Source of the DNA: Lepidodermella squamata | Lineage: Eukaryota > Animalia > Gastrotricha | Direction: 5' to 3' | Length of the DNA stretch: 64,000 bases | NCBI GenBank assembly: GCA_047495785.1 | Contig: JBLDXI010000021.1 | Span: forward strand, 248,001-312,000 | Shown here: piece after piece, positions 11,456-64,000 of the stretch | How positions within the stretch are numbered: the stretch's first letter is position 1 | Layout: each line of letters opens with the position of its first letter | Position numbers and translations under genes: made by a program | Notes under the pieces: generated by a model | What the model was told of the DNA's origin: nothing | What the model saw: the letters and a program-made list of their open reading frames with translations, nothing else | The model's database searches: none

Positions 11456-13115
11456 ATGGCAGACGTGTGCGTCGGAGCCTCTGAAAGATTTCCCGCCTCA
11501 ACGGTCGGAACTACTCATTGGAAGAATGACACCGACAAGCAAATCGGTGTTAATGCTTCTCTTATTGACAAAAATGAGAACAATATTGACACCGGGAAGA
11601 GGATCGATCCCTTGCCCCATATGCGCGATATCTATGCTGAGCTCAGCAACATGAATGCCTTAGATTACATGCGAGAAGTTCGAGTTGTAGTTAATCGTTT
11701 GAGAGAAACCCTTCTTACTGTTAACGAAAATATTAAAACGACGATGAGAACTCGTCAGCTCATGGAAAAAGAGCTGGACAATCTGCGGAAAGATCTTGCC
11801 GTTAATGAACAGTCGGTAAAGATTAGAAGAGCTAGGCCAAAGAGGGAACGCGCAGTTGACGGTGTTGACCAAATCCTGCAAGCCGAGCGCCATCAACTTT
11901 TTGGATTGAAGGAAACTGCTGAGAGGCACCTGAGAACGCTCAAGGAACATTTACAGGTAAGTTATTACTTCTACTTTGTGCTTTTCTCTGACGATGCAAT
12001 ACTTCAGAATCTCTCTGACGCACGCGATCGTCTCAGCAATGTTTTACGAGAAAGATCGCGAGTGCTAGAATTAATTCCTGCTGGGATCAAAACAGAACTC
12101 AGCGCAAACGACATCTCTTCCGCTAGCTTTTTGCGCCAAGGTCTAGGTCTGGCTCCCCCTGAATGTTGCACAAATGGTACACCTTCACAAGGAGGTTGCA
12201 TGCAGCCTTCACCGCCCAGACCGGGCACTTCAAACGGCATGAGACCGTCCACTCCAAGTCAGAATGTTGGACCACTCAGTTAGATAACTTTATACTTCTA
12301 ACGAGTAATGATAATTTATTTCGCGTTTAAATTTCAAGGTGCCATGACTCCTGAAGCGGATCAAGCAATTAAGGACGCAGTAATCACGATGGGCCGCACT
12401 GCGTCGATCAATTGCGAATCTAACCAAGCGATGAAGAAGAGCCGAGCTCTAGCTAGCGAAGCCAGGCAACAGCTAGTTACAGCACTGGAGCGTAAAATGG
12501 CCGAAACAGCTGCGGCTGCGGTGAGTTGCTCCCCAGATTTTGAAAATTTTCATTTCGACAAATCGCTTCATTTTTTCCATACAGCAACGCTTACGTCTTT
12601 CGTTGGCAGGCAACCGGGTGTCTCATAACGCTGGCGTACGGCACTACGAGAAAACAGCGCTGAGCCTGGGTCGAAATGAGGTATGCATTGTGTAATCACA
12701 AAATCCATTTCATCGCGTGGTTTATCGAATTATTTTGGCATTAATTATTTACCAGCAAAAGATACCACTGGTAATCGATATTTAATTAATATTGCAGGGT
12801 CCAACCAACTATACCGACCTGAAACCCGCGGAATTACTTGATCGCCCTCTGATTCGCGTATATCAGCGACATCCTGGAACTCAGCTGCCAGAAGCCGGCC
12901 AATTAAGGTCTGATGGTACGAGATTAACCCAGTCGACTTACACAACGAGTCGGCATATCGCCGAGATGCGTTTGGCTGCAAGCGCTCTCAACGACAATTT
13001 GACCGATAAGCGATCGGCCTTGTCTATCGATGATTCGGTTGTCAAGCTGCGTCGCAGCCATGCCGATGAAAGATGGGTTCCTGGACCCGTTCGAGCACAA
13101 TCATTTTATGTTTAA
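11456..13115 (+). CDS. CCDC105: Tektin-like coiled-coil ciliary protein CCDC105/TEKTL1
   Basis: Exons 11456-11956, 12008-12278, 12339-12520, 12585-12680, 12798-13115 in frame. Tektin-like [15 protein letters not shown]; [19 protein letters not shown]; [17 protein letters not shown]. Confidence 0.8.
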
Positions 13116-13693
13116 ATAGTATCTTTGAACTTCGAAATAATCAAAAACTTTATTTACGCATTCCTGAACTTGTAAAGAGCAGCATTAAAGCATTCCGGCG
13201 ACAGTTTTTCTTGCGCCTTCATGATAGCAAGAAAAGTCGTAGAACCAGTGAGCAAATCGTGCTTTGGCTATCATCTCTAAATAATACCCTTGCGTGAAGC
13301 GCTATCTAGTGAGAATCAAGACACTGTCGTCATCCGGTGTCGGCAACGATGCCTTACTGGCATCTTTTCGCGAATCACTTCATCTATGCTCCATATTATA
13401 GCGATATGTTGTTATGAAAGCATCAAAACTTCACTGATTGCGCTATTGTTTTTAGAGTTCTCACTTTCTTACCCAGTTCAATTTTTTTGATTCTATATTT
13501 GTGCGGCGAATCCTTAATTTCCTTTCAGCAATGTTTCTATACTGGTATGATGCAGAGGATTTATTTTTTTCATCTGGTGGCCATTATTCAATCGGAATAT
13601 TTTTGTTGAAGCTATAATATTATCGTCTGGAGAAAATAAAAACGATGTATTATAATGCATTGCAAATTTACCCTAGACGTTTATAATATAAAA

Positions 13694-14505
13694 ATGGAGT
13701 ACACCGGAAGTACCTACGACGGTGACCGTAACAACGCCAGGTGAGAACTCGCTGTTGTATATTTTCAGCCGGCTTATTTTCGAAAACACACAGGCTCGAA
13801 GGAAATGGAAAATATACACTCCCGACAAAAAGCCGGTACGAAGGGCAACTGAAAGATGGAATGTTTCATGGTCAGGGCGTAATGTATTTTGAGAACGGAG
13901 CTAAATACGTCGGCGAATGGAGCAAAGGAATCGCTATTTCGGTAAGCTGGTCATTATTTCTGTGTAGGCTTGCCTAATGAGGTGTGTCGCTCAGGGCAAG
14001 TACATTTTTGCTGATGGTTTGGAATTCGACGATTCAAACTGGCTGTATTGCGACGGCTACGATAGACGCTTCTACACCGAAATTTGTGATGGCCTGAAAC
14101 CTGCAGGTATGTTCATCAGATATTTTTGGTACTTACAATTTCAGCACTTGAAAACGCAGCGCTTATTTGTTTTGAATTTCGGTGCGAAAATTAGCGCTGA
14201 TGTTGTTTTTTATTTGATTACAGGTCGGTCCCAACTAACCAATAATGTCCCTCCTCGCCGAATCCCACCGGGTTGCTACGATACAGGCGACGGATTTTAT
14301 GATCCCAAATCGCGAATTATCGTGGACTACGACATGGCATTTTTACGCAACGCAGGTGAGTTCCTCTATATGATAAAAGTGAAGAATTTATGTTGATTTA
14401 TCAATTATCCGCGCAGACGACGACGAACACGAGTGGATAGTCAAAACTTGTCGAAAGGCATGGGACGAATTCATCGGAAAACAACCCGCAGTGGACCTGC
14501 CGTGA
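13694..14505 (+). CDS. MORN5: MORN repeat-containing protein 5
   Basis: Exons 13694-13740, 13794-13941, 13995-14106, 14224-14355, 14417-14505. MEYTGS..., [49 protein letters not shown]. Confidence 0.95.
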
Positions 14506-62885: not shown

Positions 62886-63083
62886 GATCTTGGTCCTTTT
62901 TTATGATATAAATCGACAAGCAAATAAGAGATAAGTATTGTAAAAAGAAAAAAAGATACGCGACTCTTTCTCACTTCTCATAAAATTTGAATAAATTGCC
63001 TTATTAAACTGGTTTGGCACCCTCTTGTTTTATAGGTTTTTAATAACCAAAGCTTCAATCTGTCGCCGAATACGGAGGACGAA

Positions 63084-64000
63084 ATGAGTAGCTCAGAAGA
63101 AGTTTCATGGATATCGTGGTTTTGCGGGCTTCGCGGCAACGAATTTTTCTGCGAAGTCGACGAAGATTACATTCAGGACAAGTTCAACCTTACGGGGCTG
63201 AACGAACAAGTGCCTCATTACCGCCAGGCGCTGGACATGATTCTCGACCTCGAACCTGAGGACGATTACGAGGACAACCCGGCTCAGTCTGACCTGATTG
63301 AGCAAGCTGCTGAGATGCTGTACGGGCTCATTCACGCGCGTTACATCGTGACGAACCGAGGAATCGCTCAAATGGTGGAGAAATGGACGAATGGCGACTT
63401 CGGTTTTTGCCCTCGTGTCTACTGTGAAAATCAGCAGGTGCTTCCAATCGGATTGTCTGACGTACCTGGTGAAATGATGGTTGGTTTTATTTCTCATAAT
63501 TCGCCTAATATTTTTCGAATTTTTCAAAATCACTGAAATACCAAAAACTGAGAGAGCTGATTTTCTCGTTTTTATTCCGGAATTTTTTTGTCTATTTAGG
63601 TGAAGCTGTATTGCCCTCGGTGCATGGACATTTTCAACCCGAAATCGAGCCGGCACCAGCACATCGACGGCGCGTATTTCGGGACGGGATTCCCTCATAT
63701 GCTCTTTTTCGTCCACCCGGAGTACCGCCCGAAACGCCCCACTCAACAATTCGTGCCTCGCCTCTACGGCTTCAAGATCCACCCGGTGGCCTACCAGTTG
63801 CAGTACCAGGCCGCTGCCAACTTCAAATTCCCAGTCAGAGCGTTGTACCCCGCCGGGGCGAGCGGTAACGCGGGTACCTCGGTAGCCGGTGGCAACGGCG
63901 GCCCAGCAGCCAGTGCTTCGACAGGAGCCGGAGCAGCGGCAGCGGGCCCAGTCGACCCTATCGCAGCGACCCGTCGAATGGTAGACGGCGCGGGGGCACC
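63084..64000 (+). CDS. CSNK2B: Casein kinase II beta subunit (frame still open at window end)
   Basis: Exons 63084-63479 and 63600->64000. [39 protein letters not shown]; CPRVYC...VKLYCPRC zinc ribbon; [13 protein letters not shown]; [12 protein letters not shown]. Confidence 0.98.

Follow-up and report, generated by a model that had tools for sequence, protein, structure and literature searches.

Eight gene families of the MHC paralogons within 53 kb of the Lepidodermella squamata genome: a probable fragment of the linkage group from which the MHC region also arose

The closest described counterpart of the locus reported here is the proto-MHC chromosome of amphioxus, a forerunner of the vertebrate major histocompatibility complex (MHC) that was reportedly recognized by Abi-Rached et al. 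in 2002. In the Asymmetron genome paper, one amphioxus chromosome is matched to human chromosomes 1, 6, 9, and 19 through 432 shared orthologs; 55 orthologs of the MHC locus are dispersed over its length, and the proto-MHC genes are viewed there as chromosome-wide, with compaction after the split from vertebrates (PMC13012124). Because one amphioxus chromosome matches these four human chromosomes, one ancestral chromosome would have carried the families concerned. What older work called the extended "proto-MHC chromosome" has been shown to be a mixture of several ancestral chromosomes (PMC8302630). On a broader scale, 24 ancestral linkage groups of bilaterians (ALGs) are recognized, as summarized in PMC13012124, within a framework set out by Simakov et al. 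2020 (PMC7269912), who do not discuss the MHC. Here we analyze a 64-kb stretch of the gastrotrich Lepidodermella squamata (contig JBLDXI010000021.1, positions 248,001 to 312,000; hereafter the window, at its full length), in which members of eight families that we assign to the MHC paralogons, namely CCDC105, MORN5, ATP6V1G, dynamin, PRRC2, stomatin, Lhx2/9, and CSNK2B, lie within ca. 53 kb. A compact region of this general kind is also said to exist in a placozoan, a non-bilaterian in which paralogon families are reportedly clustered, with statistical support, on a few scaffolds and in which stress and ubiquitin/proteasome genes are reportedly enriched in the region (the account of Suurvali et al. 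2014, J Immunol 193:2891, cited in PMC5002281).

Like the amphioxus chromosome, the window is one invertebrate linkage unit with pre-duplication orthologs of genes on human 1q, 6p21.3, 9q33-34, and 19p13; it carries no class I or class II genes, and most of its members have no immune function. Unlike that chromosome, over whose whole length the genes are scattered, it packs eight family members into 53 kb, in a genome that is far more compact, and none of the customary framework anchors was seen in it. Judged by its description, the placozoan region resembles the window in combining a compact genome with clustered MHC-paralogon families, but the window lacks the stress, ubiquitin, and proteasome genes of that description except for a TOPORS-like RING ligase, whose human ortholog is outside the paralogon. 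As in bilaterian ALGs, orthologs co-occur on one chromosome without fixed order, and the block is best taken as sampling one such group locally, with some mixing; ALGs are chromosome-scale, whereas the comparison here covers 64 kb and three contigs of a relative. The ATP6V1G, PRRC2, and CSNK2B families are neighbors in the human MHC class III region as well. Unlike class III, the window is without TNF/LTA, BAG6, DDX39B, C4, TNXB, and NOTCH4, and between its three genes lie dynamin, stomatin, Lhx2/9, MVP, and TOPORS.

Paralogon families in the window

The DNA of the window is animal and gene-dense, with a G+C range of 38-56%, and its genes are built of long exons with very short gaps between them. 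All open reading frames (ORFs) were read and tested exon by exon, with each exon searched singly against Pfam, the PDB, and homologs. This produced 14 genes, and an ORF survey of the window found no further credible coding sequence in the gaps between them. All eight genes of the paralogon families are inside 11.4-64 kb; seven identities are well supported, and that of the PRRC2-like gene is probable only. The eight genes, and the spacer that divides them, are as follows:

11441-13115, plus strand: CCDC105/TEKTL1 (Pfam Tektin; PDB CCDC105 chains), sub-block A
13741-14396, plus strand: MORN5 (Pfam MORN; PDB MORN5), sub-block A
14994-15457, minus strand: ATP6V1G, V-ATPase subunit G (three small exons, Pfam V-ATPase_G), sub-block A
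18797-23257, plus strand: classical dynamin, DNM1/2/3 type (Pfam domains, named homologs), sub-block A
23300-34200: repeat-rich spacer, no credible genes, separating sub-blocks A and B
34227 to ca. 43016, plus strand: PRRC2-like (BAT2/nocte-like) gene (ESM-Atlas features), sub-block B
44316-45923, minus strand: stomatin, STOM type (Pfam Band_7; PDB Stomatin), sub-block C
47795-51300, minus strand: Lhx2/9 (apterous) class LIM-homeobox gene (two LIM domains and a homeodomain), sub-block C
63084-63998, plus strand: CSNK2B, CK2beta (Pfam CK_II_beta), right end of sub-block C

The CCDC105 exons match Pfam Tektin (E 2.6e-9) and, in the PDB, exclusively CCDC105/TEKTL1 chains (best 8snb, E 2.7e-30). 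MORN5 likewise matches Pfam MORN (E 2.7e-11) and exclusively MORN5 structures (9fqr, 9d2f; E 3.6e-33). We take both to be proteins of sperm or ciliary microtubule structures. The three ORF pieces of ATP6V1G match positions 2-26, 27-61, and 68-105 of the V-ATPase_G profile. The dynamin gene encodes Dynamin_N, Dynamin_M (E 8.9e-65), PH, and GED domains followed by a proline-rich C-terminal ORF; its predicted architecture is that of a classical DNM1/2/3 protein, and its closest named homologs are dynamin-2 and dynamin-1, at 74-78% identity. Stomatin was identified by Band_7 matches on two exons and by top PDB matches to Stomatin (169 bits, E 7e-49), and CSNK2B by CK_II_beta matches on two exons (E 2.9e-50 and 5.9e-20). 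For the LIM-homeobox gene, PDB matches of the LIM exon alone do not separate the LIM-homeobox classes; the homeodomain scores 73 bits against human LHX9, with the next PDB homeodomain at 33 bits. Its two LIM domains and LHX9-closest homeodomain are those expected of the Lhx2/9 (apterous) class, to which we assign it on sequence grounds.

The PRRC2-like gene comprises five large ORFs rich in Q, P, S, and G, together ca. 2,500 codons, whose product is disordered and has RG-rich stretches. The marker of the PRRC2 family is an N-terminal BAT2 domain (Pfam PF07001 / IPR009738), which is present in all orthologs (bioRxiv 10.64898/2026.02.24.707808). In ESM-Atlas feature space, the N-terminal exon of the gene is nearest to BAT2_N clusters (0.91, with 198/256 features). 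For the ortholog from the relative described below (P0002, which spans the middle exons, window 35158-38944), the top three clusters are all BAT2_N/PRRC2, at 0.81-0.83. When the 724-aa exon was searched with HMMER through 1.8 billion representatives, the relative's ortholog was the sole match, and a word-indexed search with the conserved middle region, in which full-length PRRC2 proteins fell outside the searched length range, returned only the query itself. Over 23.2-34.4 kb, a regular-expression scan with a set of motifs of the N-terminal BAT2 domain found no match. The language-model features of two separate parts point to the family, and the size, the disorder, and the RG-rich stretches are as expected; we consider it quite probable that the gene at 34227-43016 is a divergent PRRC2 ortholog. 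Over 28600-34599, a sequencing run (X2) presumed to be RNA behaves as low-coverage DNA and gives no splice joints that would point to an upstream PRRC2 exon.

A side observation concerns the naming of one ESM-Atlas cluster of ca. 2,000-aa BAT2_N (PRRC2) proteins, which was automatically labeled "putative V-type proton ATPase subunit G 3". It looks as if ATP6V1G and PRRC2, adjacent in some other genome, had been fused into single gene models there; such fusions, if true, would bear on the age of that adjacency.

To place these families on the human map, we take the paralogs ATP6V1G1/2/3, DNM1/2/3, PRRC2A/B/C, and LHX2/9 to be distributed over 9q32-34, 6p21.33, 1q24-31, and 19p13, with STOM and MORN5 at 9q33.2, CCDC105 at 19p13.12, and CSNK2B at 6p21.33. 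Presumably, ATP6V1G2, PRRC2A, and CSNK2B lie within ca. 125 kb at 6p21.33, PRRC2C only a few genes from DNM3, LHX9 near ATP6V1G3, and miR-214 in a DNM3 intron. Five other residents of the window, MVP, TOPORS (9p21), DHX15, FNTA, and TTI1, are assumed to be outside the human paralogon. The MHC-homologous blocks have been delimited as 1q23.3-25.3, 6p21.33-21.31, 9q33.2-34.3, and 19p13.2-13.11 (PMC13012124), and the vertebrate neighborhood of Prrc2c beside miR-214 is conserved (PMC4177693). The map used here is consistent with both of these sources. An earlier reading of the letters of the window (the original prediction), which proposed a very compact and unusually unmixed proto-MHC block, had been based on a human map that agrees with ours and with the same two sources. 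Its list of eight genes in 11456-64000 is confirmed by Pfam, PDB, and homolog searches, apart from the PRRC2 call, which the ESM-Atlas features make probable; we add that ATP6V1G is on the minus strand.

The same prediction is borne out insofar as the clustering is beyond chance for a randomly ordered genome. Eight of the 14 genes come from one paralogy group, for which the binomial P is 9e-8 at a uniform background share of 5%, or ca. 2e-4 after correction for 1,993 windows; for sub-block A alone (4/4) it is 6e-6 at the same share. If the share is instead set at a chromosome-level 25-33%, 8/14 gives P = 0.01-0.05 and is unremarkable. Nor is there a significant excess of orthologs of the MHC locus itself: 3/8 (ATP6V1G, PRRC2, and CSNK2B) compared with 55/432 in amphioxus gives a hypergeometric P of 0.069. 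The framework usually asked of a proto-MHC consists of RXR, NOTCH, PBX, BRD, PSMB5/6/7-like, and C3-like genes (PMC10751288). A Pfam survey of all ORFs and gaps found none of these anchors in the window, several of which the original prediction had listed, with BAG6 and DDX39, as genes to look for on the same scaffold; BAG6 and DDX39B are likewise not in the window.

Conservation in a diverged relative

Metagenome contigs of a related organism were found by a search with the LIM exon (a single homolog at a strict E-value), and three contig neighborhoods were walked. Conserved proteins of the relative and the window are 76-95% identical. The gene orders in the relative are:

Neighborhood 1: NRF-6-like acyltransferase, CK2beta, TOPORS, MVP, Lhx, stomatin, then 13 kb of further sequence
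Neighborhood 2 (L005): PRRC2-like gene, AMP-binding enzyme, E1 dehydrogenase
Neighborhood 3: DHX15, CCDC105, MORN5, V-ATPase G, dynamin, LDLa/trypsin genes, several unknown genes, C2-RasGAP gene

Sub-blocks A (together with DHX15) and C are kept in the relative in both order and orientation. In sub-block A, CCDC105 is collinear with L006 3101-4725 at 67-90% identity, MORN5 has its counterpart at L006 5355-5888, V-ATPase G occupies the same position on the same strand, and the dynamin ortholog is 86% identical. DHX15 adjoins CCDC105 in the relative too (L006 1-2600), with a short FNTA-like match beyond it at the contig end. In sub-block C, stomatin is 80-87% identical with its order kept, the Lhx ortholog is P0001, MVP is in the same place at 76-83% identity, and CK2beta, at 90% identity, has the NRF-6-type acyltransferase next to it. 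The PRRC2-like ORFs are collinear with the gene in L005. The junctions on both sides of PRRC2 differ, however: LDLa/trypsin genes follow dynamin in the relative, and the 13 kb past stomatin holds no homolog of any window gene. Since neither the dynamin-PRRC2 nor the PRRC2-stomatin junction is kept, the 53-kb block is to be regarded as three units, A, B, and C. On two other eukaryote contigs that carry dynamin, V-ATPase G is not beside it.

The walk past dynamin revealed a further gene of interest. A C2-RasGAP gene lies ca. 7-8 kb beyond the end of dynamin in the relative (L010 18562-20489; L011/L012 11001-13822), and its best PDB match is SynGAP, at 147 bits compared with 84 bits for RASA1. 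SYNGAP1, DAB2IP, RASAL2, and RASAL3 presumably form another family spread over the four regions (6p21, 9q33, 1q25, and 19p13). Members of the same linkage group thus seem to be plentiful in the wider region of this lineage, and the presence of a SynGAP-like gene near dynamin speaks more for retention at the level of the chromosome, with reshuffling locally, than for one protected block.

The relative's loci (L001, L005, and L006) are even more compact than those of the window (3.5 kb vs 4.5 kb for dynamin, and 13 kb vs 20 kb from stomatin to CK2beta); introns and spacers are smaller, and the exon structure is mostly retained.

Between sub-blocks A and B, positions 23300-34200 contain no coding-like ORFs except a reverse transcriptase-like fragment at 25636-25968, which itself has no Pfam match. 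Short-read contigs of one sequencing run (X1) are fragmented over 28600-34599, where depth rises to ca. 2400 compared with ca. 100-200 nearby, and one alternative form in that run skips 2.7 kb (30380-33091). The spacer looks transposon-rich, with structural polymorphism. Over the same 28600-34599, run X2 gave short, low-depth contigs that cover intergenic DNA without splice joints, and it behaves as low-coverage genomic DNA of a near-identical strain or species.

Origin of the block

We consider it likely that the block is a passively retained fragment of an ancestral linkage group, now in three sub-blocks. An ancestral animal linkage group would have given rise, through the two vertebrate genome duplications, to human 6p21.3 (the MHC), 9q32-34, 1q24-31, and 19p13, and a stretch of that old chromosome would here have been squeezed to ca. 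53 kb in a very gene-dense genome. The stretch would survive as three pieces, namely A (CCDC105-MORN5-ATP6V1G-dynamin), B (the PRRC2-like gene), and C (stomatin-Lhx2/9-MVP-TOPORS-CK2beta). A and C appear to be stable in the lineage, whereas the joins A-B and B-C appear unstable, one of them being the 11-kb repeat-rich spacer, and unrelated genes would have been mixed in (MVP and TOPORS) or placed beside the block (DHX15, FNTA, and TTI1). Linkage would persist because rearrangements within a chromosome erode old neighborhoods slowly, and regulatory DNA near the Lhx gene may have helped in places. Gene identities, gene order, partial conservation in the relative, and non-randomness relative to a uniform background are observed; we infer that the shared linkage is ancestral and that selection is unnecessary to explain it. 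Nothing suggests that the genes work jointly or have an immune role.

Several points weigh against this account. The enrichment may be ordinary or exceptional, depending on the host chromosome's own share of such families. Pfam BAT2_N found no match in the four PRRC2-like ORFs tried, three of them at E up to 1. Finally, short-read contigs fail to bridge the repeats that lie in the join between dynamin and PRRC2.

If that join were an assembly artefact, A and B would have been misjoined across the repeat-rich spacer at 23-34 kb, and the block would be inflated. The broken short-read contigs of 28600-34599, with their very uneven depth and the form that skips 2.7 kb, would fit such an error, as would the different genes that follow dynamin in the relative. 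We nevertheless hold it to be highly improbable: the source assembly is in only 147 pieces, the B-C join is short and free of repeats, and even an error would leave four members in B and C without A, and A and C without B. A larger role for accident, in which the genome is scrambled, lineage-specific rearrangements gathered the eight genes, and their likeness to the paralogon is a coincidence picked from among ca. 2,000 windows by a reader expecting it, also seems improbable, albeit less so. At least two junctions are indeed lineage-specific, and the human MHC paralogon is loosely defined, its extended form mixing several ancestral chromosomes (PMC8302630). Against this stand the significance that survives correction for all windows at a 5% share, the 4/4 composition of sub-block A, and the distribution of ATP6V1G, DNM, PRRC2, and LHX2/9, for each of which two or three human paralogs occur across the same four regions, as is the signature of one pre-duplication chromosome.

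A tighter ancestral arrangement could also be envisaged, in which ATP6V1G, dynamin, PRRC2, stomatin, Lhx2/9, and CK2beta were already microsyntenic in the protostome-deuterostome ancestor and have been kept together by constraint, for example by regulatory landscapes. The same families are close together in vertebrates (on the human map given above, with the Prrc2c part partly documented in PMC4177693), the name of the ESM-Atlas cluster is a hint that neighboring ATP6V1G and PRRC2 genes have been fused into one model elsewhere, and the relative retains both A and C. Yet the PRRC2 junctions differ even in this fairly close relative, V-ATPase G is absent from beside dynamin on the two other eukaryote contigs, and MVP and TOPORS break up the block; furthermore, the amphioxus orthologs of the MHC locus are spread over the whole chromosome (PMC13012124), and the three such orthologs among our eight are not a significant excess. 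We therefore regard an ancient tight core as unlikely. A shade less likely still is its corollary that such a core gave rise to the class III/9q33-34 framework in the MHC paralogons of vertebrates, with the scatter in amphioxus being secondary, contrary to the view that compaction is confined to vertebrates (PMC13012124).

Given passive retention as the preferred account, the wording of the original prediction needs to be narrowed. "Unusually unmixed" is not supported, in view of the unremarkable P at a chromosome-level share and of the unrelated genes, with MVP and TOPORS inside the block and DHX15, FNTA, and TTI1 abutting it. Of "proto-MHC block", what stands is the linkage of several paralogon-family genes; the claim falls short in that these genes are not one conserved unit, the anchors are not in the window, and the MHC-locus excess is not significant. 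What the window probably holds is a true remnant of the ancestral linkage group from which the MHC region also arose, and "proto-MHC block" overstates this.

Other residents of the window and significance

The remaining six genes, which the original prediction had also named, are real according to Pfam matches and, for the TOPORS-like RING gene, the PWI_Topors match of the relative's ortholog:

2-2110, minus strand: EGF/FN3 gene, partial (Pfam fn3; weak EGF)
3217-6361, minus strand: TTI1 (Pfam TPR_TTI1_N, TTI1)
6463-7386, minus strand: FNTA (Pfam PPTA repeats)
ca. 7600-10334, minus strand: DHX15 (Pfam DEAD, Helicase_C, HA2, OB_NTP_bind)
55829-58915, minus strand: MVP (Pfam Vault, Vault_2/3/4, MVP_shoulder), inside sub-block C
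61133-62885, plus strand: TOPORS-like RING gene (RING finger), inside sub-block C

The TOPORS assignment draws on the relative's ortholog (44% identical), which carries a precomputed match to PF26084 PWI_Topors; the domain was absent from our local Pfam scan, including a scan of the relative's own TOPORS-like product. DHX15, FNTA, and TTI1 (3217-10348) form a tightly spaced trio on the same strand. A 417-aa ORF on the plus strand at 55976-57229 runs antisense to the MVP shoulder/cap exon and is most likely a codon-bias by-product of that G+C-rich exon rather than a gene.

The block is a further instance of a phenomenon already described in other animals, here patchy and partly reshuffled, and the compactness of the genome brings the remnant into unusually close view. 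That several class III/9q34 families share 53 kb in a protostome-grade animal adds a useful data point to set beside the view of a chromosome-wide proto-MHC (PMC13012124). It also calls for caution, as "proto-MHC" blocks will appear wherever that linkage group survives. If chromosome-scale comparisons were to reveal the same close pairs in several phyla, the MHC framework would trace to a microsyntenic core of pre-bilaterian or early bilaterian age; otherwise, and more likely, the block shows macrosynteny at close range in a very dense genome.

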